Shown piece by piece: positions 26,690 to 59,411 of a DNA stretch of 64,000 nt; the first letter of the stretch is position 1; every line of letters starts with the position of its first letter. The stretch is taken from the IMG/VR virus record IMGVR_UViG_3300035145_003993, positions 62,001-126,000 of that record. One strand, given 5' to 3'. Under the pieces are notes generated by a model, which did no database searches, was not told where the DNA came from, and was given only the letters and a program-made list of their open reading frames with translations. A program made the position numbers and the translations under genes.

Positions 26690-27005
26690 AAGTGTAACTC
26701 ATCCCTGAAAATGGTATAATAAACCATAAGGGGGGAACAGGAACAACGGATTCCTAAAGGTTAAAATAAAAAAAACCTCAAGCCTTAAAAAACTTTTTGA
26801 AAACTAGGAATAAAAACTTCAGGCATTAATAAGTGTAACCCTATAATAATAGGTTTATAATAAACCATAAGGAACAACGGTTCCAATAAGGACAAATTAA
26901 AAAAATCCTTCAAGTTTAAAAAACTCTTTGAAAATTAGGAAATAAAAACCCAGCATTAATAAGTGTAACTTTTAAATATATAATTTATTATAAACCATAA
27001 GGTAT
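26690..27005 (+). repeat. Tandem about 130-140-bp imperfect repeat, each unit carrying a promoter
   Basis: GTGTAA at 26692, 26833 and 26963. Shared AACAACGG(A)TTCC, TTAAAAAACTyTTTGAAAAyTAGGAA and GCATTAATAAGTGTAAC segments. Confidence 0.9.
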
Positions 27006-27067
27006 AAAGGCCTTATTAAATAATCTTTAACTTACCTACAACCCTATTATAAAAGGATTAAATTAAA

Positions 27068-27679
27068 ATGGAAAACTCAACACTAATGCAACAATTGTTT
27101 CAAGATTACATTCAAAACGGTGGTCAACCTAAAATTACCAGTTTCCGTTTGCATCTTGAAAAGCTAATGAAAACAGAAATCAAGCCCCTTTGCGGAGGTT
27201 CAAGAAGACTTGCCCCAGGAGCTCATGATTGGAGAAACGAATTAAAAGATCGATTTGGAGGTCGAGGTAATAAATGGATGAAAGTTTCCATTGAGGAAAT
27301 TAATCCATCTCTCGATAAATTTGATGCTGAAGGTTATGATACAGAAGATTACCGATCTCATATCGAACGAGCCGGTTTCGCTTGGATTCGATATTATGGA
27401 CCAAAGCTTAATAATGGAATTAAGGTCGCGGCATTTACTGTTCATACATTTGATGCAACAATTTATCAGCCTCAAACTCAGCACTATATACCGGTTGATC
27501 GTTTGGATGAAACAATTGAACCATTAAATGGAACTCCATTCAGCCTAAAGCTTGAAGAAGCTGGATCGATCGTTCAAAATGATACTGATGATGAAGTTAC
27601 TCCTTTAGATGAGGAATCCGCGAACTTAAACGATGAAATCCTAAGTCAAATCCAAGATTTGGAACTAGAGGACCTCTAA
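27068..27679 (+). CDS. Early protein, paralogous family A (copy 1)
   Basis: FRLHLEK..KPLCG..WR..L..RF.GRG.KW..AWIRYYGP..LNGTPFSLKLE, acidic tail; AAAGGA SD. Confidence 0.85.
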   Translation: MENSTLMQQLFQDYIQNGGQPKITSFRLHLEKLMKTEIKPLCGGSRRLAPGAHDWRNELKDRFGGRGNKWMKVSIEEINPSLDKFDAEGYDTEDYRSHIERAGFAWIRYYGPKLNNGIKVAAFTVHTFDATIYQPQTQHYIPVDRLDETIEPLNGTPFSLKLEEAGSIVQNDTDDEVTPLDEESANLNDEILSQIQDLELEDL

Positions 27680-27935
27680 GATCACCGGGATAATATAAAC
27701 TCCCATGATGCCCGTATCGTTTGATTGAAGTCATAAATAAATCTGAACTGATAGTTTGGATGGTCAAACGATAAAACTTTACTTTGATTATTTGCTTATA
27801 ATATAAGTGTAATGATAAATGAATCGTTCAACATTTAAAATGATTGTTCGATCGATTAAGAACTTTTAGTGTAATTGATCGTTTGATTAATTATAATTTA
27901 TAATCTCAACTCATTCATTTAAGGAATCGTCGTTA

Positions 27936-28190
27936 ATGGAAGAATACTCAACCCCTCTATGTCTTATTACATCGTTCTTTTTGTCAATCTTCGCTTACAC
28001 TTCGTCTCAGTCAAACGAATTACCTATCCAGCATTTAGAGTTCGATGAAATGATCATTGAACCGAGTGAATCGATGAAACGATCAATACAGATAATCGAA
28101 TTCGACGATCATGTCATCGTTTCTAGGTCAATCGCTTTAGCTGACAAAAACGAAGATGACGATGAAGACGACGAAGATTATGGATGCTAA
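27936..28190 (+). CDS. Small secreted/membrane protein with acidic tail
   Basis: Hydrophobic N-terminus, repeated IQ..EFD motif; downstream of promoter 27869. Confidence 0.6.
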   Translation: MEEYSTPLCLITSFFLSIFAYTSSQSNELPIQHLEFDEMIIEPSESMKRSIQIIEFDDHVIVSRSIALADKNEDDDEDDEDYGC

Positions 28191-28336
28191 TATCTAGTCA
28201 ATCGTTATAAAAGTAATGCTTCAAGATTCAAACGACCAGCTTCATCACATTTTCTCTCAAGTGTAACTCATCGTTTTATGAAGTATAATATATCATAAGG
28301 TCCAACAAATTAATCAACCACCCAAAAGGATTTAAT

Positions 28337-28498
28337 ATGTACAAAGTAATTAATCAAGAACTAGAAAAGTTTGTTAAATCATTTAAAACTCGTCAAGAGG
28401 CTGAAGTTTATATCGCTCGACAAGGGAACAAGACTTACGAACTACTTGATCGTCAATACCCAGTTTATATCATCGCATCTTCATCACCTTCTAAATAA
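28337..28498 (+). CDS. 53-aa hypothetical early protein (not in the track)
   Basis: MYKVINQELEKFVKSFKTRQEAE...; AAAGGA SD after promoter 28261. Confidence 0.65.
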   Translation: MYKVINQELEKFVKSFKTRQEAEVYIARQGNKTYELLDRQYPVYIIASSSPSK

Positions 28499-28508
28499 GG
28501 ATAATGTC

Positions 28509-28766
28509 ATGGATTTTAATCAAGATACACTCAATGATCGTTTATATAAAGAACATCCAGAACTCAGCTCGAATTGGTCGTTTATGGATTGGGACGATGA
28601 CAAAGCAACGATAACATATCAATTCGATGATGGATCTGATGATGAGGTCTTCATTTATAAAGACGGATCGATTCATATTTCAGAAAAAACGATATACGAA
28701 ATGAATAAGATCTTAATGAATCAAGTTACATATCGATATTTCAATCATTCTGTATCATATCACTAG
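28509..28766 (+). CDS. Hypothetical early protein (start MDFNQD)
   Basis: AAGGA SD at 28497; C-terminal part of track ORF 28371-28766. Confidence 0.6.
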   Translation: MDFNQDTLNDRLYKEHPELSSNWSFMDWDDDKATITYQFDDGSDDEVFIYKDGSIHISEKTIYEMNKILMNQVTYRYFNHSVSYH

Positions 28767-28984
28767 TCTGGCTCATATCTTAAGTGTCTAGGTGTTACAG
28801 CATCCTCGATCGTCGGCTCTAGGTTAGGTGGTATATCCATCTATCCTTCTTAGAAAAGACTCGAAGCCAGATCAAGCTTCAAACGATGAAGTTATTTAAT
28901 CAAGTGTAACTCTCATTCGTATAGAGTATAATAAACCATAAGGCCGGCCTAATCAATCATCTATTCATCCAAAGGATTAACATC

Positions 28985-29251
28985 ATGAAAAAAATTACAA
29001 AAGATCAATTCTACAGACTAATCATGTCCTGTAACCCAGAACTTCATAAACTTCCTCAACACATCCAAGATGACATCTCCGATCTACGTAAAGTCACTAA
29101 GAATGGCAAAGCTCATCTACTTCTTACTCATCCAGAAGGCCAAGATAATTACTTCCTTGATTACGTCGAAGTAGATATGCTATGTGAAGAAGAAATTGAT
29201 GAAACTAGACTACATGCTAAAGAAAATAGAGGACGTCTTGTCGCCATTTAA
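28985..29251 (+). CDS. Hypothetical early protein
   Basis: Promoter 28904, AAAGGA SD. Confidence 0.7.
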   Translation: MKKITKDQFYRLIMSCNPELHKLPQHIQDDISDLRKVTKNGKAHLLLTHPEGQDNYFLDYVEVDMLCEEEIDETRLHAKENRGRLVAI

Positions 29252-29442
29252 TAAGTTTAATTAAACTTAAGATCCTACAAGTTACTAGTATATCTTATAT
29301 CTACTTTAATATTACCTTTTGAGTACTTCAAGATTCAAACGGCCAGTTTCATCACATAAGTGTAACTCTTAAATCCGAATGGTATAATATATCATAAGGT
29401 CCAATAAATCAATCAACCAATTAATCTACAAAGGATTTAAAT

Positions 29443-29637
29443 ATGAAAGTTCGAAAAAGAGCATCTCAAACAAATAATATCTCAGTTTGGGCAGAAGCTA
29501 ATAAAAAAGGTGGTTTCATTATTTACATGGGGATCAAAGGAACAGACGCTAAATCGATCGTTGGGGCCGCGGCATACAAAGAAACTCTCGAATATAATTT
29601 AAGAAAAGCTAAGTTCAAGCACGGAATCAAACTTTAA
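29443..29637 (+). CDS. Hypothetical early protein (basic)
   Basis: Promoter 29360, AAAGGA SD. Confidence 0.7.
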   Translation: MKVRKRASQTNNISVWAEANKKGGFIIYMGIKGTDAKSIVGAAAYKETLEYNLRKAKFKHGIKL

Positions 29638-29815
29638 GATAACAGATCGTTCGGTATACTTCTAACTTTAACCTCATCTTTAAAATGTCTAGATAAAACA
29701 TCGCTCGGCTTCATCACAAATTTCTCTTAAGTGTAACTCTTAAATCTGAATGGTATAATATATCATAAGGTCCAATTAATCAAACAAACCAATCAAATCA
29801 AAAAGGATTTAAAAC

Positions 29816-30454
29816 ATGAATAACTCAAACCTACAAACCTCTGAACAGGAGAACAGCATGTCTACAATTCAAAAACTTTTCCAAGAATATCTCGAATCAG
29901 GCGGTCAACCAAAACTTACAAGCTTCAGATTTCATATCGAAAAACTAATGAAGACCGATATAAAACCTTTATGCGGTCGATCTGGAAAGTCTTCATCAGG
30001 TAATGATTGGAGAAAAGATCTTATGAATCGATTTAAAGGTCGCGGATCAAAATGGGTCTTTGTAAGTCTCGAAGAAATTAAAGATACTCTCGATCGTTTT
30101 GACCAAGAAGGAATTGATACAGAAGATTACAGATCTTGGACTGAAAAGAAACAAAAAGCTTGGATTAGATTTTATGGTCCAAGGCTCGATAATGGAATCA
30201 AAGTCGCGGCATTTACAGTTCATACCCTAGATTCAACAATCTATCAGCCTCATACATTACATTATATTCCAATCGATCGTCTAGATGAAACAATTACTCC
30301 ATTAAACGGGACTCCCTTCAGTCTCAAGCTTGAAGTTGATGATGTCCAACAGGAAAATGATACTGAATCAAACGAAGAAATTATCGAATATATCTCTAAA
30401 TTTGATGAAGATCTCTTACAAGGACTCGAAGATTTACAGAACGATGATCTATAA
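29816..30454 (+). CDS. Early protein, paralogous family A (copy 2)
   Basis: Co-linear with 27068-27679, with long identical stretches (GIKVAAFTVHT, PLNGTPFSLKLE). Confidence 0.88.
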   Translation: MNNSNLQTSEQENSMSTIQKLFQEYLESGGQPKLTSFRFHIEKLMKTDIKPLCGRSGKSSSGNDWRKDLMNRFKGRGSKWVFVSLEEIKDTLDRFDQEGIDTEDYRSWTEKKQKAWIRFYGPRLDNGIKVAAFTVHTLDSTIYQPHTLHYIPIDRLDETITPLNGTPFSLKLEVDDVQQENDTESNEEIIEYISKFDEDLLQGLEDLQNDDL

Positions 30455-30660
30455 ATCTAATTAAATCTTAATCCAGATCTTAGAAATCATTCCTCGTTAG
30501 ATGCTTCAATACTACAAGTAATCGCTGCATCACACTCAAGATGTATATTTTGTCGATTGATGAAATATACAAGACAAACATACGATTAAATCAGTTTATA
30601 ACTTTTTTGAATTGTTATATGAACAATCATATTTCTCATAAAGTAAAGTCTGGAGCCAAA

Positions 30661-30825: not shown

Positions 30826-30871
30826 ACTAAACGATCTACACTACAACATTATAATATTACAAGGAAAAAAC

Positions 30872-31102: not shown

Positions 31103-31251
31103 TTAACTTATCTAAATCAATCTGTGAAAGTGCCTTGCCCAGTTTATAACTCGCATCATCAAAAATGAAAGTGTAACTATTATTTATTTTGAGTATAATA
31201 TATCATAATCCAATTCAAATCAACCACTAACTAAAATAAAAAAGGATTAAA

Positions 31252-31544: not shown

Positions 31545-31662
31545 ATTTTATATTAATGAAAGTTTTAAAATATTATTTTTGTGTAATTAATTAAAACCAT
31601 TGTTATAATATACCATAATCCAATTCAAATCAAACAACCACCAAAAAAAAGGATTTAAAATT

Positions 31663-32247: not shown

Positions 32248-32538
32248 ATGACTGTATCTAATAGAATTAAAATCGAATGGGAATTTGATATATCAGTAAA
32301 TGAAGAATTACAAAATCGTCTAAACTTATCTGAAGGGCAGATATATGAAATGCTTGAAGACGAAGACGAAGAATCAAGACTACATAGTTTATGTTGTGGA
32401 GAAACAGGAACTCCAGAATGGATAGATCTAGATCTTTTCTTTGAAGACCCTCGAAGTATAAGTGAAGATGAAATTACAGAAACTTTATCTGATGATTATG
32501 GTTGGCTGATTAAATCATGGGAATGGCAATATGTGTAA
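32248..32538 (+). CDS. Acidic hypothetical protein
   Basis: IKIEWEFD...LSDDYGWLI; the stop codon lies in the next promoter's -35 box. Confidence 0.7.
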   Translation: MTVSNRIKIEWEFDISVNEELQNRLNLSEGQIYEMLEDEDEESRLHSLCCGETGTPEWIDLDLFFEDPRSISEDEITETLSDDYGWLIKSWEWQYV

Positions 32539-32656
32539 CCTTAATTAATTTAGCGTATAATGTCTCATAAGGGGAATTTAGAATGAAACTTATTTTTATG
32601 TTACTACTACTTTATATTATCTTCCATGCCAACACACCAAGAAAAAGGAAATAACA

Positions 32657-33177: not shown

Positions 33178-33297
33178 CTACTTTTCCGTAGATCTTGTCG
33201 CTGTTTTTTATATCTTGAATAATGCTTGATATTTCAACACTTAGTATCATCACAAAAGTGTAACTTTAATTTTTTTTGAGTATAATACACCATAAGG
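33178..33297 (+). repeat. About 120-bp promoter-cassette direct repeat, copy 1 (copy 2 at 34310-34427)
   Basis: Shared CTACTyTTCCGTAGATCTTrTCGCTGTTTTTT...ATCACAA(AA)GTGTAACTTTAATTTTTTTTGAGTATAATA.A.CATAAGG. Confidence 0.9.
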
Positions 33298-33348: not shown

Positions 33349-33750
33349 ATGATTACTGATTATATTATTGCTTCAGTTATGATTAACAATGTTCCCCCAT
33401 CAGCTTATGAACAAGGCTTCGATGATTTTTTACAGGATATGGATGATCCAGTTCTTTTCTCACACTTTGTAAATAAATACAATGTTACTGAAGGCATAAT
33501 AATTAAAACTCATGAAAATAATTCCGGTTATAATGTACCCTGTATTACAGCCTATGTTGATTATAATACTTGGAATACTTGGTCTGAGGATATGAAAGAA
33601 TTTTGGAATATGATGTTCCACCCCGAAATTCAGAAAAAAGAAAAAAATGAATGGGGAATTGATTGTATACTACCAAAGCTATCAGATGAAGAAATTGATA
33701 ACATCATTATTCCGCTAGAAAAACTCAAATCAAGATTTCCTAATGTGTAA
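33349..33750 (+). CDS. Hypothetical early protein
   Basis: Promoter 33258; ends in GTG TAA, the next -35 box. Confidence 0.7.
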   Translation: MITDYIIASVMINNVPPSAYEQGFDDFLQDMDDPVLFSHFVNKYNVTEGIIIKTHENNSGYNVPCITAYVDYNTWNTWSEDMKEFWNMMFHPEIQKKEKNEWGIDCILPKLSDEEIDNIIIPLEKLKSRFPNV

Positions 33751-33822
33751 TTTAAATTAACCCTGTTTTATAATAAATCATAATCCAATAAAAACCATCA
33801 TTTAATTCAAAAGGATAAAAAC

Positions 33823-34309: not shown

Positions 34310-34427
34310 CTACTCTTCCGTAGATCTTATCGCTGTTTTTTTGTATCTAAAAAATGCTCAGTATTATATCACACTGTTTCATCACAAGTGTAACTTTAAT
34401 TTTTTTTGAGTATAATATATCATAAGG
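34310..34427 (+). repeat. About 120-bp promoter-cassette direct repeat, copy 2
   Basis: See 33178-33297. Confidence 0.9.
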
Positions 34428-34755: not shown

Positions 34756-34826
34756 CTCTTAAGGTGTGTAACTCTGCTCTCTCTCCTATTATAATATATT
34801 ATACCAACAATACAAAGGATTCTACA

Positions 34827-35359: not shown

Positions 35360-35567
35360 TAATGATTGTCAAAATCAGTACGAGTCTCGAGCTAAGAGTC
35401 GAGTTCTTTGGCAGTTTATTAAAAAAGAATTATCTGTTTAGCTCTGTTAATGATTTTAAATTAAGTTAATAGGTTTTATCGTATAAGTAAAAAAGATTAA
35501 AACAGGTGTATTTAAGTCCATTTGAGACTATAATAAATATATAATGTTTTATAGAGGAAAAGAGAAG

Positions 35568-36151: not shown

Positions 36152-36361
36152 AGAGATGTTTGGATATTCTATTGTATAAGAGATATATTATGTGTAGAGT
36201 TAGATTTTTACAATAGAGGTTATAAAAAGATTTTTTATTATAGTCTGAATAGATTAGAGATTTAATTTTGTGTTATATGATTTGAGTGTAATTAAAATAA
36301 AAAGTGATTATAATGAATTATAAGGTTTAATAAACAGCCCAACCAAAAAAGGAAGCTTAAA

Positions 36362-37330: not shown

Positions 37331-37431
37331 GAGTTTATATTATTTGAGTGTAATTAAAATAAATTATAGGTATAATAAACCATAAGGTTCAATTAATCAA
37401 ACAAACATTCATTCAAAAAAGGAAATAAAAA

Positions 37432-39509: not shown

Positions 39510-39582
39510 GTGCAATTTAAATAAATTATAAGTATAATATACCATAAGGCATTAACAATCAATCATTCAAAAGGAAAAAAAC

Positions 39583-40612: not shown

Positions 40613-40713
40613 TAGTTTAACAAATGTGTATTTGTAATAAATTATTATTATAATAAAACATAAGGTAATTCATTTAAAAAAACTTTCAACCACTCAGTCA
40701 AAAAGGATATAAT

Positions 40714-42310: not shown

Positions 42311-42407
42311 AATGATCAAGGTTTAATTAAGTGTAATTTAAATCAATTTGGTATTATAATAAACCATAAGGTAATTCAATCAACCATCCAACTAAAAAGG
42401 AAACATA

Positions 42408-42776: not shown

Positions 42777-42967
42777 TGATGAACTATACCGTGTGGGCTG
42801 GAGGAACAGAAGTTTGTGATGAATATCTCAACAGTTTGGAAGCTGCACAAAGAATTGCAGACGAGTATCGTAAAAAAGGATATGATGACGTTATTATAAT
42901 GTGGCAACCAGAAGAAATTACCGTGGATGATCTTGTAAGTGTAATTAAGAATCATCACCAATTATAA
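42776..42967 (+). CDS. Early protein family E (intact copy)
   Basis: YTVWAGGTEVCDEYL..EY..KGYDDV. Confidence 0.7.
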   Translation: MMNYTVWAGGTEVCDEYLNSLEAAQRIADEYRKKGYDDVIIMWQPEEITVDDLVSVIKNHHQL

Positions 42968-43015
42968 TAAATCACAAATCATATTCACTCAATCATTCAA
43001 AAAGGATTTAATTAT

Positions 43016-44434: not shown

Positions 44435-44526
44435 TTTTTAATGTGTATATTCATTTATTAATTGGTATAATATACCATAAGGAATAAAACAAATTAATTA
44501 ACTTTTCTTTTAAATGGAGTTTTATT

Positions 44527-44943: not shown

Positions 44944-45036
44944 GAAATTTTATGTGTATAATTTATTTAATTAATGTATAATAAAACATAAGGTTTATAA
45001 TTAAAAATTTCAATCATTCATTCATTAGGAAAAAAA

Positions 45037-46215
45037 ATGGATATTTCAAACTATCAATCAGAATATAATAATCTTGTAACTTTTGTTGATCTTATTGTTA
45101 ATAAAGGTAAAATAAAAAACAATAAAGATAAAAAAGAAAAATGGGCTTCGTTTAAAAAAGAAAACGAATCTGAAATTAGGGATCTCCTTAATATTCCTAA
45201 TGAATTAAAAGATAATCCTTGTAATCTTGTCAGTTTCGATATTGATGAAGAAAAAAACTTATTATTATTAAACTATACTTCACAAGCTCATAATGTTCTC
45301 CATGTTTATAAAAATGGATGGTCAAATGAACTTAAACTTTGTAGAGGGTTAGTTTTTTCTATTAAAAATAAAATTAAGTTAGTAAGTAGAGGATTTGAAA
45401 AATTCTTTAACGCTAACGAAACTAAAAAATCTCTTCAAGAAGAATTAACAAGAACTTACGATAAAGATCAATTATTCGATGCTTATGAAAAAATAGATGG
45501 TCACATGATAGAGTTTTTTGAACACGAAAATAAAATGTGTGCTACTACTCGAGGAAAATTTAATACTATATCTTCAAAAGAATCATTAAGTTTAATTTCG
45601 TATGAAGAATGGAATCAATGTAAAGATTATTTATTATCTAAGTATAATATAAACTTAATGACTATTGTAGCAGAATTAGTTACTCCATTTTCAAAAGTCT
45701 TAGTTGATTATTTCAATGATGAATGTGTTTACATATTAGCATCATACGACAATAAAGGAAATAAAATCAGTTATGACCTTTTAAAAGAAATATCAAGTTT
45801 TATTAATAAATCTAAATTACCAGAAAAGAGAAGATACACACTTTCAGAAATGTTTAAAGAAGTTACAAGAAGAGATATTAATAACCATGAAGGATGGGTT
45901 CTTAATCTCGATGGTGTCTTACTTAAATTCAAGTATAACAATTATATTGGAATGATGGTTAGTAATAAGATGTGTTATAAATATCTTATGCAAACTATGA
46001 TTAATAAAACAACTAATAAAATGGTTTCTACTTTAGACAAAGAATCTATAAAAGAAGTTGAATTACTTCTTAATAATATTGATCTTAAGATTACTGAATG
46101 TAAAACTATTTCTACTTATAAACCTTTATATGAATTATGGTCTGATGAGGAAGGAAGCTTAAACTACTTCAGATTGGTCTGTCGGAAATTTTACAAAAAC
46201 CTAATTAATGTGTAA
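45037..46215 (+). CDS. RNA ligase, T4 Rnl1-like
   Basis: LLLNY..CRGLVF..VSRGFEKFFN; motif I YEKIDG; AEL; motif IV EGWV; motif V LKFK. Confidence 0.88.
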   Translation: MDISNYQSEYNNLVTFVDLIVNKGKIKNNKDKKEKWASFKKENESEIRDLLNIPNELKDNPCNLVSFDIDEEKNLLLLNYTSQAHNVLHVYKNGWSNELKLCRGLVFSIKNKIKLVSRGFEKFFNANETKKSLQEELTRTYDKDQLFDAYEKIDGHMIEFFEHENKMCATTRGKFNTISSKESLSLISYEEWNQCKDYLLSKYNINLMTIVAELVTPFSKVLVDYFNDECVYILASYDNKGNKISYDLLKEISSFINKSKLPEKRRYTLSEMFKEVTRRDINNHEGWVLNLDGVLLKFKYNNYIGMMVSNKMCYKYLMQTMINKTTNKMVSTLDKESIKEVELLLNNIDLKITECKTISTYKPLYELWSDEEGSLNYFRLVCRKFYKNLINV

Positions 46216-46294
46216 TTTACTATTTATAAAGTTATAATAAAACATAATCTATATCCTTAATAAAAAATCAACTTTCTTTTAAAGGAAAATAAAA

Positions 46295-46990: not shown

Positions 46991-47076
46991 ATGTTCAAAA
47001 AGTTTAAAGTGCATCTTTTCTTTTTAAATAATATAATAAATCATAATTTCAATCCTATCATTTAAAGGAATTTCTT

Positions 47077-48912: not shown

Positions 48913-48987
48913 AATTTTATTTTTTTATGTGTATTTATTAATTAATAATGGTATGATATATCATCAATCAATAAAAAGGAATTTATT

Positions 48988-49471: not shown

Positions 49472-49753
49472 GTGATAAAAAATATAAAAATTAGAGTTAC
49501 AACAGATTGTTTTGAATGTGATGATCTAAAAGATTTAGATGAAATTAGTTTAACCAATTTTTTTGATTTAAATACAAATATTAATCATCTTAGAGAAATT
49601 TCTTCAATTAAAATAAAAGACAATATCCTAACAGCTGTTAATAATGGAAAATTAGTTTGTATTGAGAATTTAGATATGACTTGGGAAAATTATTTTAAAA
49701 TTCTAGATAGCATATCAGATTTAAAAATAAATAACAATTTAAGTGTAAATTAA
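49472..49753 (+). CDS. Hypothetical protein
   Basis: GTG start; 3' end overlaps the next -35 box. Confidence 0.45.
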   Translation: MIKNIKIRVTTDCFECDDLKDLDEISLTNFFDLNTNINHLREISSIKIKDNILTAVNNGKLVCIENLDMTWENYFKILDSISDLKINNNLSVN

Positions 49754-49922
49754 ATTATTACATAATATAATAATAATATAAAGGATCAATATGGAATGTT
49801 ATTACGATTACATTATAAGAATGTGTATTTGTTACGAAGAAGAAATTATTAATACTTCTTACAAAATTTTTAACTTAGGATTTTATTTGGTTTAAACTTT
49901 ATTTGAAAGGCAAGTAATCTAT

Positions 49923-50765: not shown

Positions 50766-50974
50766 AATTTTTATTTTTTATGTGTAAATTTAATCTTAAT
50801 TTAATATAATATACTATAAATAATTTTAAGACACTTTAATTAAATTATTGGTCTTAATAAAACAGTTTTAATAATAAACCTTTATTTTTAAGTCTGTATA
50901 TGTTTAGATTTCTTATAATATTTGATTTCTAAACTGCCCAAAAAATTTTTAACACGTTCTCTGAAAGGAATACA

Positions 50975-51361: not shown

Positions 51362-51443
51362 AATTTATTATACATAGTTTATTTCTTTGATAAAATAAAA
51401 TTAGAGCTTCTTATGATAAAAAAATATTTTAAGAAGTTCATTT

Positions 51444-51516
51444 GGGCTTTTAGTGTAATGGTTAGCACGTCACTCTCATAAAGTGTTTAGTCTGGGTTCA
51501 AATCCCAGGGAGCCTA
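51444..51516 (+). tRNA. tRNA with CAT anticodon (Ile2 or elongator Met)
   Basis: Acceptor GGGCTTT/GGAGCCT; D stem GTGT/GCAC; loop CTCATAA; T arm CTGGG-TTCAAAT-CCCAG. Confidence 0.85.
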
Positions 51517-51542
51517 TTTATTAAATTTTTTAAGAGTTTAAA

Positions 51543-51908
51543 ATGAAAAATAATATATGGTCTAGAAATAGACATGTACTTAAAAAAATAAAAAACCCTT
51601 CTAAAAGAAAATATGAGATTGAAATAGTAATACCTGAATTGACTTTTGAAGGTGATAAGAAAAAGCCAGATTTTGGTAAGCTTTGTATAAATTTTTGTCC
51701 TAATGACTGTGTTATTGAACTTAAATCTTTAAAAGAATATATCTACGAATTTAGAAATCAACTTTACTCATATGAAAGAATAATAAATGTAATTTTTGAT
51801 GATATTATGGAAATATATAATCCGAAAAGTTTAAGTATAATTTTAAGTACAAATCCAAGAGGTGGTATATCATCAAAATTAAAAGTCGATTCTGAAAATA
51901 ATGTTTAA
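51543..51908 (+). CDS. QueF-like T-fold protein lacking the catalytic Cys
   Basis: PELT...[26 protein letters not shown]; the canonical CPxTGQPDF is replaced by EGDKKKPDF. Confidence 0.8.
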
Positions 51909-51931
51909 AATATATAGATAAAGGAAAACAG

Positions 51932-53230
51932 ATGTTAAATAAAAATAACTTAGACTTTAAGATCAAAAACATAGATTTAGCTTCTTGGGGAAGAAACGAA
52001 GTAATACTTGCAGAAAAAGATATGCCAGGATTAATGTCTTTAAGAGAAAGATATGGAAAAACAAAACCCTTAACAGGAGCAAGAATTACTGGGTGTCTTC
52101 ATATGACAATCCAGACTGCAGTATTAATTGATACACTAATTGAATTAGGTGCTCAAGTTAGATGGATGACTTGCAACATTTTCAGTACACAAGATCACGC
52201 TGCAGCTTATATTGCAAGTAAAGGTATTCCTGTTTTTGCTTGGAAAGGAATGACTGAAGATGAATATGAAGAATGTTTAAATGATGTTTTATGGTTTGAC
52301 GATCAAGGGCCAAATATGATTTTAGACGATGGAGGAGATCTTACTAAATTTATAATAGAAAATCATTCTGATCTAATACCTAACATTAGAGGGGTCTCAG
52401 AAGAAACAACTACAGGGGTACTTCGTCTTAGAGAATTTGAAGAACAATTAAAACTTCCTTTTCCTGCGATTAATGTTAATGATTCTGTTACAAAATCTAA
52501 ATTTGATAATAAGTACGGTTGCAAAGAAAGTTGTGTTGATGCAATTAGAAGAGCAACAGATACAATGATGGCAGGAAAAGTTGCAACAGTTGCTGGTTAT
52601 GGTGATGTTGGAAAAGGATCAGCAGCATCATTAGCAGCTGCTGGATGTAGAGTTATTGTAACTGAAATTGATCCTATTTGTGCTTTACAAGCTGTTATGG
52701 ATGGATTTAAGGTAACTACAATGGAAGAAGCTGTTGTTGAATCTGACATAATCGTAACAGCTACCGGTAACTATAACGTTGTTAATAGTCATCACTTTAA
52801 TCAAATGAAAGACAATGTGATTGTTTGTAATATTGGACACTTCGATAATGAAATTGACGTTAAATGGTTAATAGAAAATGCTGAAGAAACAAATATTAAA
52901 CCTCAAGTTGATCTTTATAATTTAGATGGAAAATCAGTTATATTATTAGCTAAAGGTAGACTTGTTAATTTAGGTTGTGCAACAGGACATCCAAGTTTTG
53001 TAATGTCAGCTTCATTTACAAATCAAGTCCTTGCTCAAATTGAACTTTGGACGAAATCTTCTTTTTACGAGAATAAAGTTTATGTTCTTCCTAAAATCTT
53101 AGATGAAGAAGTTGCTCGACTACATTTAGAAAAAGTTGGTGCAAAACTTGATATATTAAGTGAAAATCAAGCTGATTATATTAATGTAGAAATAGATGGT
53201 CCTTTTAAAAATAAAGATTATAGATATTAA
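51932..53230 (+). CDS. ahcY: S-adenosyl-L-homocysteine hydrolase
   Basis: [13 protein letters not shown]; [12 protein letters not shown]; LDDGGD; EETTTGV; [12 protein letters not shown]; GYGDVGKG; NIGHFD; [18 protein letters not shown]; C-terminal YRY. Confidence 0.97.
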
Positions 53231-53302
53231 ATAAAAAAATTATACAATTATTAATATAGTCATATAATAAAAATAGATTAATTAATTTTAATCTAAAAAC
53301 AA

Positions 53303-53375
53303 GCTGGTGTAGCTCAATTGGCAGAGCAGCTGATTTGTAATCAGCAGGTTAAGGGTTCAAATCCCCTCACCAGCT
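53303..53375 (+). tRNA. tRNA-Thr(TGT)
   Basis: GCTGGTG/CACCAGC; anticodon arm GCTGA-TTTGTAA-TCAGC; GGTTCAAATCC. Confidence 0.95.
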
Positions 53376-53423
53376 TTCCCGTAATTAAACAATTACAGAC
53401 ACAGACACAGAAAGGAGTTTGAT

Positions 53424-53627
53424 ATGGGAGATTCAAATAAAAATGGTTACGAGATTCGTGAGAGTTTGCTTGGACTTGCAGTTGGAATTTTGGATACAAG
53501 AAATGCAACATTACGTGAAAACGAGTATATAAAGCCAGAAGGACAGCAACAAGAAATTCAACCTTACGATGTACAAGAAGTTTTACAAACTGCTGAAACA
53601 TTGTATCAATTCGTCTCCAAGAAGTAA
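53424..53627 (+). CDS. Conserved phage-type hypothetical protein
   Basis: NGYEIRESLL..A..L...EVLQTAE.LYQFVSKK; AAAGGAG SD. Confidence 0.7.
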   Translation: MGDSNKNGYEIRESLLGLAVGILDTRNATLRENEYIKPEGQQQEIQPYDVQEVLQTAETLYQFVSKK

Positions 53628-53636
53628 TGAGTTTTT

Positions 53637-53804
53637 ATGCTGCATAAAGTAGTAAGATTATTATTGAGTTTACATGGAATTTTTCACGTTATTGAAACAG
53701 CGTTAAATCTATATGAAGGTGCTTATCTTAGTGCAGCATTAACTTTATTCTCTTCGATTATCATGTTACTTGGAGCTTATATTGATTATGATCATCACAA
53801 GTAA
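53637..53804 (+). CDS. 55-aa membrane peptide
   Basis: MLHKVVRLLLSLHGIFHVIE...DHHK. Confidence 0.5.
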   Translation: MLHKVVRLLLSLHGIFHVIETALNLYEGAYLSAALTLFSSIIMLLGAYIDYDHHK

Positions 53805-53833
53805 TTATGTCACCATGATCATGGTGTCACTTT

Positions 53834-53905
53834 GGGATATTAGCTCAATGGTAGAGCAGTGGACTTTTAATCCATTGGTTGTAGGTTCGAGTCCTACATG
53901 TCCCA
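53834..53905 (+). tRNA. tRNA-Lys(TTT)
   Basis: GGGATAT/ATGTCCC; GTGGA-CTTTTAA-TCCAT; GTAGG-TTCGAGT-CCTAC. Confidence 0.95.
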
Positions 53906-53909
53906 TTCA

Positions 53910-54785: not shown

Positions 54786-54861
54786 ATAATAAATATGATT
54801 AGATCAATGCTAATGCAAAATTAATTTAACAATAAATAAAAAAATAATAATATAATCGTAT

Positions 54862-54948: not shown

Positions 54949-54950
54949 CT

Positions 54951-55167: not shown

Positions 55168-55557
55168 ATGAAATTTTTAATTGACGAAGACGTATTATTT
55201 TCAACATCACCTCAAGAATTAAATGTAATTAAAAATAATCTAAGAAAAATTTTTTTAGAAATTCATGAAATAAAAAAGTGGAAATGGGAATTTTCTAAAG
55301 AAACAATTCAAGTTTGTATTAGAGATGGAAAATCATATCAAGACAATTCGGAACATTCAAAACCTACACTTTGGATTGCTTTAATTTGGGCTAATAGGAA
55401 AGGATCAACAAGATCTCCTGAAGAAGATAGAGAAATTTTTATTTCGAAAAGTACTATGTCTAAACCTTATTCTGAACAGAATGTATATACGTATCATTCT
55501 TATTCTGATTTGTTACAAAAATATAATTCAGGTAATTTAAATTTAATTATCAGATAA
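55168..55557 (+). CDS. Hypothetical protein
   Basis: Promoter 55097, AGGA SD. Confidence 0.6.
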   Translation: MKFLIDEDVLFSTSPQELNVIKNNLRKIFLEIHEIKKWKWEFSKETIQVCIRDGKSYQDNSEHSKPTLWIALIWANRKGSTRSPEEDREIFISKSTMSKPYSEQNVYTYHSYSDLLQKYNSGNLNLIIR

Positions 55558-55587
55558 ATATTTATCATATAAACAAGGAATATATTT

Positions 55588-55842
55588 ATGATAAATGAAG
55601 AACTAAATAAATCTGATCTTAGAAAAATAAAATCTTTAATTAGACAAGAAATTAAGGATTTCGAAAAAGAAACCTTAGAAAAAAAAGTAAAATATATAAT
55701 TAAAAAAGATTTTAAAAATATTGAAAATATAGATAAAGATTTTGATAAAAAAGTAGAAGAAATTACAAAAGACGTTATGCAAGCTTTTCATGATCTTCTT
55801 TACAAAGAAAAATATATTTTAAAAACAAAAGTTAAAAAATAA
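55588..55842 (+). CDS. Helical hypothetical protein with an INEE..IKSLIRQEI leader-like start
   Basis: AAGGA SD; resembles the ITE..LRSLIRQ leaders. Confidence 0.6.
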   Translation: MINEELNKSDLRKIKSLIRQEIKDFEKETLEKKVKYIIKKDFKNIENIDKDFDKKVEEITKDVMQAFHDLLYKEKYILKTKVKK

Positions 55843-56001
55843 AAAAGTGTAATTAGATATAATTCATATTATAATGACACATAATTTAACTCTGTTTATA
55901 ATTTATTAATTGATACATTGAAATCTATTAATTAAAATAAAAATCATTAACAGATCTTATTTAGATGTTATTTTGATTTTAAAAGTTAAAAGGAGTTTTT
56001 A

Positions 56002-56181
56002 ATGTCTAAAAGTAAAAAAACAGAAGAAAAATTATATAAATGCCTACATTGTAAAAAAAAATTAGTTTCTTTTCATTTTCATGTTTGTAGCAAATCCCAT
56101 CAAGAATATTTTGGTTGCAAATTTTGTGATGACTGGTGTATAAAGTGTAAAAAAGATTGGAATGACTGTAATGAAACTTAA
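56002..56181 (+). CDS. 59-aa Cys/His-rich Zn-finger protein (not in the track)
   Basis: AAAGGAG SD; CLHC..HVC..H..CKFCDDWCIKC. Confidence 0.6.
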   Translation: MSKSKKTEEKLYKCLHCKKKLVSFHFHVCSKSHQEYFGCKFCDDWCIKCKKDWNDCNET

Positions 56182-56404
56182 TAAGATATTTTTTGACGGA
56201 AAAGGCTACTTAAGAAAATGTATAGAATTAGAAGAATATCTTGATGATGAATTATTTAAAATTTGTTCAAGATTTAATTTTATTCCAATTGATAGTATAT
56301 CATTTGAGAAATATCAACCACAAACTTATTGTGATATTGTAATAAATGGATATCACATTGAATCTGTAAGTATAGAGCATCTTTATACACAAATACCACA
56401 ATAA
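56162..56404 (+). CDS. Hypothetical protein
   Basis: 80-aa ORF. Confidence 0.5.
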   Translation: MTVMKLNKIFFDGKGYLRKCIELEEYLDDELFKICSRFNFIPIDSISFEKYQPQTYCDIVINGYHIESVSIEHLYTQIPQ

Positions 56405-56430
56405 ACTCTTAAATAGTAAAGATTTTAAAA

Positions 56431-56670
56431 ATGAAAAATTCAGAAATTAAAAAGTTCTTCAAGAATATTAAAAACTTAAATTTAAGTAATATTGAAAAAA
56501 ACAAAATGATGGAAATGATGCAAGTTAGAGGTATAAATAAAATAAATAAAAAAATGTCTTATAGTAATTTAAAAAGTATCTTAAACAAAAAGAATGGAAA
56601 AATTACTAATTTAGTTTTAGGACCTGAATGGTCGAAATTAATTTTTGTAGATATAAACATAGAAATATAA
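56431..56670 (+). CDS. Basic hypothetical protein
   Basis: 79-aa ORF. Confidence 0.45.
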   Translation: MKNSEIKKFFKNIKNLNLSNIEKNKMMEMMQVRGINKINKKMSYSNLKSILNKKNGKITNLVLGPEWSKLIFVDINIEI

Positions 56671-56673
56671 AAT

Positions 56674-56934
56674 ATGGATAATAAAGAAATAATAGAAGTC
56701 TTAAAAGAAGATATTCATAATAATGCTTTTGTAATTTTTTGTGTTAGTGAAGATGGATCTGTAACAATGATTACAACAGGTGATATAAGTAAAATACAAA
56801 AAGATATATGCTCTAATATGATAATTGTATCAGGTGATCACTCAATAATTTTATCTTCTGTTCTTTTCTTAGAAAGAACATTCGAAAATATCATGTATAA
56901 ATTTAAAGTATTTTTCGAAAGAATTTTCAAATGA
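56674..56934 (+). CDS. Hypothetical protein
   Basis: 86-aa ORF. Confidence 0.5.
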   Translation: MDNKEIIEVLKEDIHNNAFVIFCVSEDGSVTMITTGDISKIQKDICSNMIIVSGDHSIILSSVLFLERTFENIMYKFKVFFERIFK

Positions 56935-57024
56935 AATACTTTAAAAGTGTAATTTTGTAATATAAGTTGTATAATATATCATACCAAAAAACAATAACCT
57001 TAATTATATTATTAGGAAATAAAT

Positions 57025-57591
57025 ATGGGTAATAAAGCTTTTAAAAGATACATTAGAGAAAGGTATCAAGGAAGAGGTAATTCTTGGGTAAGAATTGAAA
57101 AAGATAGTGAAACATATGAAAAAATTATTAATCATCTAAAAGATTTAAATTTAAACTTAGAAAACTGTGATTATATAAAACATATAACAAGAGAAGGTTT
57201 TGCTTGGATACGATTTTCAAAACCTGAAGGGACGCAAGAAGAACCTATTTCAAGATTTGAAGTTAGATATAAATCTTCAAAAATTGATCAACCAGAATCT
57301 TTTCTTTTAATCGATGATAATACAGCAAAGAATTTTAAACTATTAGGCAATACTCCTTTAAAGCTTCAACTAGAAATTGATCCTAAGAATAGAAAACAAA
57401 AAGATAATCTTGTAAATAGTATTAAAAATCTTAAAAAGAAATCTTCAAATAATATTAATCAAGATAATTTTGAATCTTATGAAGAAGTTAAAATTATTAA
57501 GGAAAGGCCTTTAACTAAACCTTCTAATAGAGAACTTGAAGAATGGTATGAATTCTTAAAGATAAATAATCTATATGAAGAAAATGTGTAA
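57025..57591 (+). CDS. Early protein family A (copy 4, N-terminally shorter)
   Basis: RERYQGRGNSWVRI..FAWIRFSKP..FEVR..KIDQP..LGNTPLKLQLE; ends in the next -35 box. Confidence 0.8.
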   Translation: MGNKAFKRYIRERYQGRGNSWVRIEKDSETYEKIINHLKDLNLNLENCDYIKHITREGFAWIRFSKPEGTQEEPISRFEVRYKSSKIDQPESFLLIDDNTAKNFKLLGNTPLKLQLEIDPKNRKQKDNLVNSIKNLKKKSSNNINQDNFESYEEVKIIKERPLTKPSNRELEEWYEFLKINNLYEENV

Positions 57592-57774
57592 CAAATAAAA
57601 ATTTAAAGTATAATCATTCATGATAGATTTAATTTTAATATCTTTTTTCGTTTTAGTCTTTAGTTTTCTTCACAGTTTTTATAACAACAGAAAAAGATCA
57701 GACTTTTATTTTATTTTTGTTTTAACAGAAATATCAATTATATACAGTTACTTATACTATATTGGGAGGATTTA

Positions 57775-58110
57775 ATGAGAATTAAATGGATTGAAGTTAA
57801 AAATGGAGATGCTGTTTATTTCAAAGAAAAAACAGGTTCTGGTTCTGTAGTAAAAACTAAAAATCATGGTAGATATTTTATGCCAGCAAAAATTGGAATG
57901 AGAATTAAAGGAGAAATTAATCCAATCGAAAAGCACGAAAGGTTTATTTTTCAAAATTCAAAAGTTCAAATGGTAGATGGATCTTCTCGCATAGTTAAAT
58001 GTTTTTTAATTAGAGTTTCTGATAATTCAAACTTAGCTATCAGTGAACAGCAACTAATGCAATATTTTTATAAAAAAGATGAAAGTAGTTTAAGTGGATA
58101 TGATTGTTAA
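57775..58110 (+). CDS. Hypothetical protein
   Basis: GGGAGG SD. Confidence 0.6.
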   Translation: MRIKWIEVKNGDAVYFKEKTGSGSVVKTKNHGRYFMPAKIGMRIKGEINPIEKHERFIFQNSKVQMVDGSSRIVKCFLIRVSDNSNLAISEQQLMQYFYKKDESSLSGYDC

Positions 58111-58327
58111 TAGTAGACCAAAAAAATCAAAAATAGAAATTGATTTAAAAGGACCAAATGGTAATGCTTTTATATTACTTGGATTAGTTGAATCTTTAGG
58201 GAAACAATTAAGTTTTCCAAAAGAAGTTATTAGTGATATAAAAAAAGTTATGATGATGGGATCGTATGAAGATTTAATTAAAACTTTTGATATTTGGTTT
58301 GGTGATCATGTCATACTCTATAGATGA
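58094..58327 (+). CDS. Conserved phage-type hypothetical protein
   Basis: IDLKGPNGNAFILLG..MM.GSYEDLI..F. Confidence 0.65.
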   Translation: MDMIVNSRPKKSKIEIDLKGPNGNAFILLGLVESLGKQLSFPKEVISDIKKVMMMGSYEDLIKTFDIWFGDHVILYR

Positions 58328-58580
58328 TATTAAATTAGGTGATATGCTTTGGGTTGAGTTAAAAGGTCCAGACCAGAACTATGGTTATGGTGAAGTTATT
58401 AATATTTGGAAAGATTCAGACACAGGATATGAATTTTTTGATTTTCATTGTTTAATTAACGGAGGACAAAGGTCTGGTAGGATTGATTTAATAATAGAAA
58501 AACCGACTGCTAGAATGACATCTAAACTTTTGCAATCAAGAAAAGAATTTAACGAGATTATGAAAGAAAAAAATAGATAA
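58308..58580 (+). CDS. SH3/KOW-like hypothetical protein
   Basis: IKLGDMLWVE..GYGEV. Confidence 0.55.
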   Translation: MSYSIDDIKLGDMLWVELKGPDQNYGYGEVINIWKDSDTGYEFFDFHCLINGGQRSGRIDLIIEKPTARMTSKLLQSRKEFNEIMKEKNR

Positions 58581-58595
58581 AGCGTTTAAATAAAA

Positions 58596-58811
58596 ATGAA
58601 TAATATATCTGTTGGTGATTTAATAAAATATAAATCTTATGTATATCCAAAAGGATTAATTTGTCTAGTTGTAAAATTAGATAGAATATATAATATCCCA
58701 ACAAAAAACTATTTCGAGCAATATACTCTTTATTGTTCAAATACTAAACATAAATTTAGAATATGGAATAGTACATGCAAAAATTCATCAAGTCTAGAAA
58801 AGGTAAATTAA
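58596..58811 (+). CDS. SH3/KOW-like small protein
   Basis: ISVGDLIKY..GLICLVV. Confidence 0.5.
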   Translation: MNNISVGDLIKYKSYVYPKGLICLVVKLDRIYNIPTKNYFEQYTLYCSNTKHKFRIWNSTCKNSSSLEKVN

Positions 58812-58812
58812 T

Positions 58813-59097
58813 ATGTCAAATAAATTAAATTGTTCTTCATGTAAAGCTGGAATTCTCTGTCAATGTAAAACTAAACAAAAGAAAAAAAGAGAAAACGTAA
58901 ATCATCCAGATCACTATTTGAGAAACAGTGGTCATGAGGTAATTGATGTAATAGGAGCTTGGAATTTAAATTTTGAATTAGGAAACGCTGTTAAGTATAT
59001 TGCAAGAGCAGGAAAAAAAGATTCTAATAAAGTAATTGAAGATTTAGAAAAATCAATTTGGTATATTAAAAGACAAATAGAAAATATTTCTAAATAA
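58813..59097 (+). CDS. DUF3310 family protein
   Basis: VNHPDHY..EVIDVI..FELGNAVKYIARAGKK..EDLEKSIWYI. Confidence 0.88.
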   Translation: MSNKLNCSSCKAGILCQCKTKQKKKRENVNHPDHYLRNSGHEVIDVIGAWNLNFELGNAVKYIARAGKKDSNKVIEDLEKSIWYIKRQIENISK

Positions 59098-59148
59098 TTT
59101 ATATTTTAATCATTAACGCTATATATAAAAAAAACATTAGGAGTATTA

Positions 59149-59364
59149 ATGATTAAAATTAGAAAAATAGTTTGGGACTTTAGTGATACTGAGTTTGAAG
59201 ATTGTGACTATGAAGAAGCAAGAAAAATTGCTGTTCTTCCTAAAAGTCTTAAAATAAACGAAGACGATCTTGACTCAGATGCGGAAGAAGAAGATATTAT
59301 CTTTTATCTTGAAGAAAATTATAATTTCTCTGTAAAGGAAATAAAAACTGATTTGGACGACTAA
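59149..59364 (+). CDS. Acidic hypothetical protein
   Basis: AGGAG SD; KIVWDF pattern. Confidence 0.6.
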   Translation: MIKIRKIVWDFSDTEFEDCDYEEARKIAVLPKSLKINEDDLDSDAEEEDIIFYLEENYNFSVKEIKTDLDD

Positions 59365-59411
59365 AGTGTAATTAAAAAATTTATCGATTATAATATATTA
59401 TAGGAGATAAA

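Follow-up and report, generated by a model that had tools for sequence, protein, structure and literature searches.

What starts transcription of the many small genes carried by a phage that is known from metagenomes, and does the promoter word that recurs in front of them belong to the host or to the virus? The question is raised by a stretch of 64,000 nucleotides (the window in what follows), which corresponds to bases 62001-126000 of the IMG/VR virus record IMGVR_UViG_3300035145_003993, a linear record of 211,364 bp with 27.4% GC and about 84% completeness that is called G000 here. Between 26.4 and 61.6 kb the window holds a block of some 80 open reading frames (ORFs), mostly small and on the plus strand. 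Along this block a promoter-like cassette is repeated, which is composed of a -35 word of the type GTGTAA, a spacer of 17 or 18 nt, the -10 hexamer TATAAT and a box CATAAGG at the predicted start. We favour, at a probability of roughly 0.55, the explanation that the cassettes are pre-late promoters of sigma-70 geometry, opened by the polymerase of the host and furnished with a -35 word that is specific to the phage family. Positions refer to the window, unless they are given as genome positions, which refer to the complete record.

The cassettes and their position relative to the genes

A search with GTG[CT]A[AT]-N17/18-TATAAT yielded 31 sites on the plus strand, all between 26692 and 59394, and none on the minus strand of the window. 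The sequence-only reading of the window had claimed about 34 copies, all on one strand and none within the first 26 kb. The cassettes and their strand were confirmed, the number is corrected to about 33. A two-block weight-matrix scan found 30 strong sites, all on the plus strand between 26.7 and 59.4 kb, and added those at 26963 and 48929, the -10 hexamers of which are TATTAT and TATGAT; the remaining 31 of the 33 cassettes have TATAAT exactly. The same scan gave three weak sites on the minus strand and zero in the reversed genome. The absence from the first 26 kb holds as well, as the lone pattern match there (at 23150) has no CATAA, is located within a block of minus-strand genes and looks like a chance occurrence. 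Equal frequency on the minus strand or within genes, the possibility that the sequence-only reading had raised against itself, was not observed; the copies are intergenic.

The exact form GTGTAA-N17-TATAAT has 21 matches, where 0.03 are expected on basis of 100 dinucleotide shuffles. On the plus strand of the genome, GTGTAA is found exactly 17 nt upstream of 21 of the 371 TATAAT hexamers (the runner-up hexamer reaches 4), and 21 of the 91 GTGTAA words are followed by TATAAT at that distance. Moreover, all 16 instances of CATAAGG located 5 nt past a -10 hexamer carry a GTG.A. word at -35. The spacer measures 17 nt in 29 cassettes and 18 nt in four, and the extended consensus reads aaGTGTAAyT-N13-gTATAAT-AwAyCATAAGG, the spacer being otherwise free. 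G-35, T-32 and A-31 are nearly invariant among the window cassettes, TG at -15/-14 is present in about a third of them, and past the AA at -37/-36 nothing stands out that could constitute an A/T-rich UP block. Genome-wide there are nine more copies, all on the minus strand and mostly without CATAAGG, in the region between genome positions 130 and 195 kb where the genes run the same way; one of these is located directly upstream of the gene for the phage sigma factor. The module for head formation and packaging (genome 1-70 kb) has no cassettes. A search of the literature for GTGTAA in phage promoters returned nothing relevant.

The position of the cassettes is equally regular. They are located on the strand of the genes, either between genes or overlapping the stop of the preceding ORF by 6 nt (one exception overlaps by 29 nt), in a genome of which the intergenic share is only 9%. 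The next ATG follows 40-60 nt past the -10 hexamer in most cases, and there is about one cassette per two to three small genes. The cassettes are very probably real promoters. At 32533, 33745, 46210 and 57586 the stop codon of the preceding ORF is the TAA inside GTGTAA, so that the gene end and the following promoter are fused to the base. The region in between the cassette and the gene, the leader, is poor in G, rich in CA and predicted to be unstructured, and is followed by an AAAGGA Shine-Dalgarno sequence. Fold prediction found no significant structure in the leaders, nor in the tandem trio of cassettes at 26.7-27.07 kb. This trio (26692-27068) has a spacing of 131 and 130 nt with a repeated 78-nt unit in between (77% alike) and is free of ORFs; the three units might act together as a stack of promoters in front of ORF 27068, or give rise to short non-coding transcripts.

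CATAAGG has a fixed distance of 5 nt to the -10 hexamer (6 nt in the related genome G008). With 40-50 nt to the ATG it is too far away to act as the ribosome-binding site of the gene and its register is fixed relative to the -10 hexamer rather than the ATG, which points to a function in initiation or in the choice of the start site. Initiation at the A after the C would give transcripts that begin with AUAAGG. Considering that a perfect Shine-Dalgarno sequence has UAAGG as its 5' half, an alternative role as a 5'-terminal mRNA signal, a stabiliser or a nuclease target, is possible. Contigs from a relative that is around 93% identical across 26.7-32.6 kb are present in three metatranscriptome runs, the libraries of which may include DNA. 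Two adapter-flanked contig ends, at 26740 and 29782, are located 14-17 nt past predicted starts, a suggestive distance, though not one that can be used.

The sequence-only reading had also described an upstream element TTCATCACA. It is present, yet at six cassettes only and not as a fixed part of the promoter: the word TCATCA[CA]A is found 1-12 nt upstream of GTGTAA, all six cases falling between 28.2 and 34.4 kb inside duplicated intergenic segments, and genome-wide it occurs 11 times on the plus and 9 times on the minus strand, without strand bias. We have rejected it as a promoter element because of this variable spacing, the subset of cassettes involved and the restriction to duplicated segments.

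Table 1. Members of the cassette family in the small-gene block, and the gene for the detached region-4 protein (window coordinates)
Feature	Position	Strand	Remark
Cassette 1: GTGTAA-N17-TATAAT, then AAACCATAAGG	26692..26720	+	first of three tandem units without ORF between; 131-bp repeat
Cassette 2: GTGTAA-N17-TATAAT, then AAACCATAAGG	26833..26861	+	
Cassette 3: GTGTAA-N17-TATTAT, then AAACCATAAGG	26963..26991	+	76 nt before ORF 27068
GTGTAA-N17-TATAAT without CATAAGG	27869..27897	+	38 nt before ORF 27936
Cassette with ATATCATAAGG	28261..28289	+	TCATCACA 11 nt upstream
Cassette with AAACCATAAGG	28904..28932	+	
Cassette with ATATCATAAGG	29360..29388	+	TCATCACA 3 nt upstream; 81% like the 29731 cassette over 90 nt (repeat family D2)
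Cassette with ATATCATAAGG	29731..29759	+	TCATCACA 12 nt upstream
Cassette with ATATCATAATCC	31171..31199	+	several relatives' contigs have only this stretch in common
Cassette with ATACCATAATCC	31581..31609	+	
Cassette with GTCTCATAAGG	32533..32561	+	TAA of GTGTAA is upstream ORF stop
Cassette with ACACCATAAGG	33258..33286	+	TCATCACA 3 nt upstream
Cassette, 18-nt spacer, AAATCATAATCC	33745..33774	+	TAA is upstream ORF stop
Cassette with ATATCATAAGG	34388..34416	+	TCATCACA 1 nt upstream; 92% like the 33258 cassette over 50 nt
Cassette, 18-nt spacer, weaker downstream box ATATTATACC	34766..34795	+	
GTGTAT-N17-TATAAT without CATAAGG	35506..35534	+	9 nt before called ATG; among the weakest members
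Cassette with GAATTATAAGG	36286..36314	+	
Cassette with AAACCATAAGG	37348..37376	+	leader predicted unstructured
GTGCAA variant with ATACCATAAGG	39510..39538	+	
GTGTAT variant with AAAACATAAGG	40626..40654	+	
Cassette, 18-nt spacer, AAACCATAAGG	42331..42360	+	
Cassette, 18-nt spacer, AAATCACAAATC	42939..42968	+	29-nt overlap with upstream ORF end
GTGTAT variant with ATACCATAAGG	44443..44471	+	
GTGTAT variant with AAAACATAAGG	44954..44982	+	in front of RNA ligase gene 45037-46215
Cassette with AAAACATAATCT	46210..46238	+	TAA is stop of RNA ligase ORF
GTGCAT variant with AAATCATAATTT	47009..47037	+	
Weak member GTGTAT-N17-TATGAT, then ATATCATCAAT	48929..48957	+	matrix score 22.7
GTGTAA-N17-TATAAT, degenerate downstream box	49743..49771	+	
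GTGTAA-N17-TATAAT, then ATACTATAAAT	50782..50810	+	upstream of ORF 50975 and the tRNA/AdoHcyase (S-adenosylhomocysteine hydrolase) block
Cassette with GACACATAATTT	55847..55875	+	
Cassette with ATATCATACC	56947..56975	+	
Cassette with CATTCATGAT	57586..57614	+	TAA is upstream ORF stop; 5 nt before called ATG
Last cassette, ATATTATAGGAG	59366..59394	+	17 nt before ORF 59412
sigma4-Zn gene (P0001), 87 aa, Cys-rich domain and sigma region 4.2 helix-turn-helix	10782..11045	+	within minus-strand late block; outside the range of the sequence-only reading (26692-59394)

Conservation in related phages and the question of the host

The cassette was compared with the sequences of four related IMG/VR records. 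In G001, a complete genome of 239.5 kb (239,550 bp, 29% GC, with terminal repeats), GTGTA[AT]-N17-TATAAT occurs 34 times, often followed by AAACCATAA, and the pattern GTG[TC]A[AT] with N17/18 gives 41 sites. In G004 (201.6 kb, 44% GC, about 73% complete) the form is GTGCAA-N17-TATAAT, found ten times on one strand and in several cases followed by ..TAAGG, and in the complete genome G008 (293.4 kb, 39% GC) it is ttcTGTAAAAAA..TGGTATAAT-actactATAAGG, found 14 times on one strand. In G006 (75.7 kb, 40% GC, about 21% complete) no enriched word was found; this record does have a homologue of sigma4-Zn, the small protein listed in the last row of Table 1. Invariant within the family are G-35, T-34, A-31, A-30, the 17 nt, TATAAT and the (A)TAAGG at the start, whereas -33 and -32 vary. 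The upstream regions of orthologous sigma genes contain the GT..AA word in loci of 29-45% GC, and in three genomes (G000, G001 and G008) the sigma gene has a cassette in front. The architecture is kept in relatives of which the sigma factor is only 40% identical and the flanks are unrelated. The proposal of a lineage-specific, one-strand promoter regulon around which the small-gene region is organised is supported, as the same architecture recurs in the related phage genomes.

The suggestion that the -35 word could help to identify the host did not survive the comparison, since GT(G/A)(T/C/A)AA at 17 nt is kept in relatives with 27%, 29%, 39% and 44% GC. A word that is the same across relatives of 27-45% GC follows the phage lineage and not the host. 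Judged from this distribution, both the -35 word and the ATAAGG at the start mark the phage family, and the word is inherited across hosts that must differ widely. An assignment to the Bacteroidota on basis of AdoHcyase, which is encoded in the small-gene block, was considered and rejected. The best matching named genomes are indeed Bacteroidota (66-71% identity), but the homologues at 74-98% identity are mostly on metagenomic contigs and two of them belong to the phage family itself (G001 and a 273,025-bp IMG/VR record). As the closest homologues are partly on phage-family contigs the gene is not a usable host marker, and the strong AAAGGA Shine-Dalgarno sequence argues against such a host.

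Canonical promoters of the TTGACA type are not enriched in the genome, where 98 were found and 107 are expected. In the intergenic DNA of G000 and three relatives there are practically no near-perfect ones. A multisubunit RNA polymerase was not detected in the phage; a search for a T7-type enzyme was uninformative, its controls being silent. With TTGACA-type promoters not enriched and no phage RNA polymerase detected, the cassettes are the only candidates in sight for the start of transcription, and it must be the polymerase of the host that is employed. The simplest view would be that they are ordinary host-dependent early promoters, in which the odd -35 word mirrors the preference of the primary sigma factor in the host clade. 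The perfect TATAAT and the canonical spacing agree with that, as does the lack of another promoter type to start the infection. GTGTAA has T-34, G-33 and A-30 in common with TTGACA, although it does not qualify as the -35 hexamer of a sigma-70 promoter. However, relatives of 27-45% GC are unlikely to share one host clade, and in G008 the base at -33 is an A in nearly all listed copies, a poor fit to a sigma-70-like reader. In addition, the pattern was found at control level only in five arbitrary bacterial genomes, none of which is a known host. We consider this view quite unlikely.

A phage sigma factor, a detached region 4 and the reading of the -35 word

The phage encodes a sigma-70-family protein of 250 aa (P0002, genome 146881-147633, minus strand) with Pfam regions 1.2, 2 and 3. 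It is RpoD/RpoS-like and matches the RpoS model with 205 bits over positions 19-242 of 285. In the alignment with solved RpoD/SigA chains it continues through region 4.1 (..LTPKEEKIIRLRFGI); in region 4.2 the first helix of the helix-turn-helix is missing and the protein ends midway in a degenerate recognition helix. Region 2.4 reads YACWWIKQSALQ, versus YATWWIRQAITR in SigA. The form of about 250 aa is encoded on 44 IMG/VR contigs at 26-80% identity.

A second promoter class provides a putative target for this sigma factor. The top-enriched 7-mers in the 70 nt before gene starts of G008 and G004 are ATATTTA and TATTTAT. ATATTTA is 6-8-fold enriched (23 observed versus 3.4 expected in G008, 14 versus 1.8 in G004) and is found 24-49 nt before the ATG of many large genes (560 to 2,349 aa), structural genes included; a conserved -35 signal upstream of it was not found in these two genomes. 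G001 has TATTTATAAAT at the same position before genes, and in the AT-rich G000 the enrichment is weaker (20 versus 8), with examples at genome positions 8700, 124923, 133833 and 184960. An earlier candidate for the late motif, CTATATAATTA, was superseded by ATATTTA, which is enriched family-wide. A -10 element that differs from TATAAT and lacks a -35 fits a sigma factor with an altered region 2.4 and without a working region 4.2, and the phage sigma factor thus probably serves the ATATTTA class as a late class. If so, the TATAAT of the cassettes would be left to the host's primary sigma factor, and the cassettes would form the pre-late class. We consider the latter assignment likely, and the reading of the -10 hexamer by the host sigma factor somewhat less so, though still favoured. 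The label 'early', used by the sequence-only reading, is kept as an inference from the gene content (ORFans and the sigma gene) and from the absence of cassettes from the head and packaging module.

The programme that we favour would then run as follows. At infection, the host RNA polymerase with its primary sigma factor would open the cassettes via the consensus -10 hexamer, often aided by a G at -13 or a TG at -15/-14. One of the cassettes would drive the phage sigma gene, the product of which would subsequently serve the ATATTTA class of structural genes. The -35 word and the start box would be tuned to something that is carried by the phage lineage and not to a particular host. Several points weigh against this explanation. 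GTGTAA fits TTGACA at 3/6 positions, and its use by host sigma-70 may be poor without help. The cassette before the sigma gene would fit just as well if the phage sigma factor regulated its own gene. The RNA libraries consist of contigs only, which break at repeats and possibly contain DNA. Finally, the region upstream of the sigma4-Zn gene has a CTATAAT but neither a GT..AA word nor a cassette.

This free-standing sigma4-Zn protein (P0001), a predicted zinc finger joined to a region 4.2, is the leading candidate for the reader of the -35 word. Over the 35 residues at its C-terminus it matches sigma region 4.2 (Pfam Sigma70_r4, 41 bits; the RpoH, RpoS and RpoD models as well). Aligned to region 4 of Thermus sigma-A, of which the chain was crystallised on -35 DNA, it reads TLQEIGDLFGITRMRVCQIEKNVLEKIKK, with TRMR[VI]CQIEK where sigma has TRERIRQIE. 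Two residues with which sigma-70 contacts the -35 element are thereby changed (E to M and R to C). These are the counterparts of E585 and R588 of E. coli sigma-70, to which genetic and structural studies assign base contacts in the -35 hexamer. Homologues are present in G001, G006, G008 and G010 and at 274 IMG/VR loci. C13, C24, C29, C42, W32 and TRMR[VI]CQIEK are invariant in 42 aligned homologues, an invariance that is partly forced by the search pattern. In an AlphaFold model (pLDDT 73) confidence is limited to the helix-turn-helix. In a structure search only these 35 residues overlaid region 4 of sigma-A, with all E-values above 0.2, and the Cys-rich half gave no match. The genes of P0001 and P0002 are about 74 kb apart on opposite strands, and they co-occur in G000, G001, G008 and G010. 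The sigma4-Zn gene is divergent from a gene for a PIN and PhoH fusion protein of 446 aa (9374-10714, minus strand), and in relatives the intergenic region of 70-80 nt between the two carries TAAATAT, which is ATATTTA on the PhoH strand.

An invariant, altered reading head is thus found next to an invariant, altered -35 word that varies exactly at -33/-32, a pairing that is suggestive as a correlation only. That sigma4-Zn reads the -35 word is a tentative proposal. It could act as a co-reader or booster, as a partner of the phage sigma factor, or as an occluder of the cassettes in late shut-off. Equally tentative is a more specific version, in which sigma4-Zn would be a dedicated GT..AA reader that docks on the polymerase bound to host or phage sigma, at the place otherwise taken by the resident region 4, and a three-state programme would be derived from one dismantled RpoD.

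The two proteins could also act together as a two-piece phage sigma factor that reads the whole cassette, P0002 recognising TATAAT and sigma4-Zn recognising GT..AA at the putative site AAGTGTAACT. The regulon would in that case be an autocatalytic 'middle' class, in need of leaky host transcription or an injected protein. What speaks for such a division is that the proteins cover complementary parts of one sigma profile (columns 477-709 of PHROG 351 for P0002 and 693-725 for P0001; in the RpoS model P0001 covers positions 204-274). The invariant replacements at the -35 contacts alongside a word that is invariant at -35, -34, -31 and -30, the strict 17-bp spacing, which is typical of a sigma-linked -35 reader, and the cassette before the sigma gene in three genomes all point the same way, and self-activating split sigma factors such as Tn916 Sig7-8 are known (bioRxiv 10.64898/2026.10.01.756105). 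However, the residues of region 2.4 that read -12 are changed in P0002, the -35-less ATATTTA suits a sigma factor without region 4.2 better, and TATAAT and TATTTA are unlikely to be optimal sites for one and the same region 2. Moreover, the start of the programme would be circular and the sigma4-Zn gene has no cassette of its own. We therefore regard the two-piece reading as unlikely, albeit less so than the assignment to the preference of a host clade.

That lack of a cassette suits a further possibility, in which the promoter consists of the (extended) -10 only and GT..AA is an operator for a phage protein that shuts the early regulon off. Early shut-off is general in large lytic phages, and sigma4-Zn, as a free helix-turn-helix that is predicted to read DNA, could be such a protein. 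An extended -10 that works without a -35, TGGTATAAT, is present in the cassettes of G008. In the window cassettes, however, TG at -15/-14 is restricted to about a third, the exact 17-bp register exceeds what an operator needs and the word is without dyad symmetry. The operator role is consequently very unlikely, and host-opened pre-late promoters with a family-specific -35 word stay the favoured explanation.

Known systems, recombination and surrounding genes

The sequence-only reading had pointed to the early promoters of T4, as having a modified -35 GTTTAC. The analogy is imperfect: the review by Hinton (2010, PMC2988021) calls these promoters excellent matches to sigma-70, and GTTTAC is absent from its text. 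There is a likeness in that T4 has dozens of strong prereplicative promoters, with information beyond -35/-10, that are used by the unmodified host polymerase. The cassettes differ in that their -35 matches the consensus at 3/6 and that they lack the UP block. Formally closer are the middle promoters of T4 (PMC2988021), in which a -10 of the host type is joined by an upstream box that is specific to the phage, takes the place of the -35 and is read by a phage protein, a role for which sigma4-Zn is the candidate here. In T4 the MotA box TGCTTtA is centred at -30, at 12 +/- 1 bp from the -10, and its reader is a non-sigma activator that acts after AsiA has remodelled region 4 (PMC2988021). In the cassettes, by contrast, the word occupies the -35 register proper (17 bp), and its proposed reader is the helix-turn-helix of a sigma region 4.2. 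Matches to MotA or AsiA were not found among the nine larger early ORFs in PHROGs and Pfam, ORFs below 100 aa not being searched. The late class would be served by a phage sigma factor, as it is by gp55 in T4.

Split sigma factors have been described as well, i.e. gp55/gp33 of T4, gp34/gp33 of SPO1, SigO-RsoA of B. subtilis and Sig7-Sig8 of Tn916 (bioRxiv 10.64898/2026.10.01.756105). The likeness is that the region-2 and region-4 parts reside on separate polypeptides of one phage or mobile element. In the present case, however, the large piece is near-complete (regions 1.2 to 4.1 with a decayed 4.2) and the small piece is a four-Cys module joined to a conserved region 4.2. In none of these four is a near-complete RpoD-like piece matched with a region-4.2 piece that binds metal.

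A third comparison concerns the promoter-early stem-loops (PeSL) and hyperplastic regions of T4-type phages (Arbiol et al. 2010, PMC2839356; Comeau et al. 2014, PMC4122927). In both cases short early-promoter cassettes are repeated within one variable region, where they flank small ORFans and run in the same direction as the genes; those of the T4-type phages act as recombination junctions between related phages, and the present ones may do so. The PeSL consists of a promoter of the sigma-70 consensus and a GC-rich stem-loop terminator, whereas the cassettes have a non-canonical -35 and are not enriched in hairpins: between 26 and 45 kb 8 terminator-like hairpins were found, where 5.4 +/- 2.4 are expected, and no hairpin is common upstream of the cassettes. 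The extra part that is conserved here is formed by the start box and the leader. By its DnaE-like polymerase and its RpoD-like sigma factor, the phage does not show itself to be of the T4 type.

Neighbouring cassettes are 81-92% alike over 50-90 nt, spacer and leader included, and near-repeats of this length that flank ORFans would let the cassettes serve as junctions for homologous recombination. Contigs of relatives that are about 93% identical have the joints 28887>29349, 28945>29318 and 31208>28969 (from seawater DNA and RNA; metagenomic, at 90% likeness), and three to five contigs share only the 51 nt of 31168-31218 and diverge on both sides. These joints give a weak hint that relatives may delete, swap and re-join genes at the cassettes. 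Near-repeats and mosaic junctions would also be expected if the cassettes were merely copies of a short mobile or recombination repeat, with a TATAAT that is incidental in AT-rich DNA. That origin is extremely improbable: conservation is confined to the -35 word, the -10 and the start box, with a free spacer, all copies are co-oriented with the genes at about 50 nt before start codons, and the architecture outlasts the divergence of the flanks in the relatives with a 40%-identical sigma factor.

The genes around the cassettes fit into the following layout. The major head protein, the portal and the large terminase are encoded at genome 2-14 kb. Giant head-decoration-like proteins, the PIN-PhoH protein and a helicase are found at 1-15 kb of the window, where the first 8265 nt (minus strand) hold two huge ORFs with head-decoration or cement-like repeats, one of more than 1,637 aa that runs off the window and one of 1,087 aa. 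The DnaE-like polymerase, DnaB, a ligase and GroEL follow past genome position 126 kb. Besides its ORFans, the small-gene block encodes an Rnl1-like RNA ligase, AdoHcyase and three tRNAs. The RNA ligase gene occupies 45037-46215, behind the cassette at 44954; the tRNA genes (Met, Thr and Lys) and AdoHcyase are located at 51443-53906, within the cassette-driven block. An Rfam scan returned the three tRNAs and nothing else. The larger ORFs of the block gave zero Pfam matches and one match in PHROGs, to a family of unknown function. ORFs 27068-27679 (203 aa) and 29816-30454 (212 aa) are paralogues, neither of which could be assigned to a family; their DNA is 72-81% identical in several blocks, all of them offset by the same 2778 nt. 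An alternative genetic code was not applied. A close DNA relative was not found among cultured phages, and tblastn with the polymerase, the sigma factor and sigma4-Zn did not find cultured members of the lineage. The best DNA match stems from a wetland metagenome and relatives are present in seawater metagenomes.

The promoter classes of a phage constitute the wiring diagram of its takeover of the cell, and hardly any have been described from uncultured phages of the sea and of wetlands. With its -35 word, -10 and start box, the family-wide promoter model is of high confidence and lends itself to the annotation of early regulons and operons across hundreds of phage genomes from metagenomes. 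An unusual -35 can belong to the virus instead of the host, which calls for caution in the prediction of hosts from promoter words. The repeated cassettes would provide a second case, independent and from outside the T4 group, in which promoters mediate the modular shuffling of genes. The motif is now linked to an unstudied pair of sigma fragments, by which a long-standing question, the re-specification of the -35 by phages, becomes directly testable in vitro. If the proposed role of sigma4-Zn is true, it would represent the appropriation of sigma by a detached piece of sigma itself, and one that is widespread considering the 274 IMG/VR loci.

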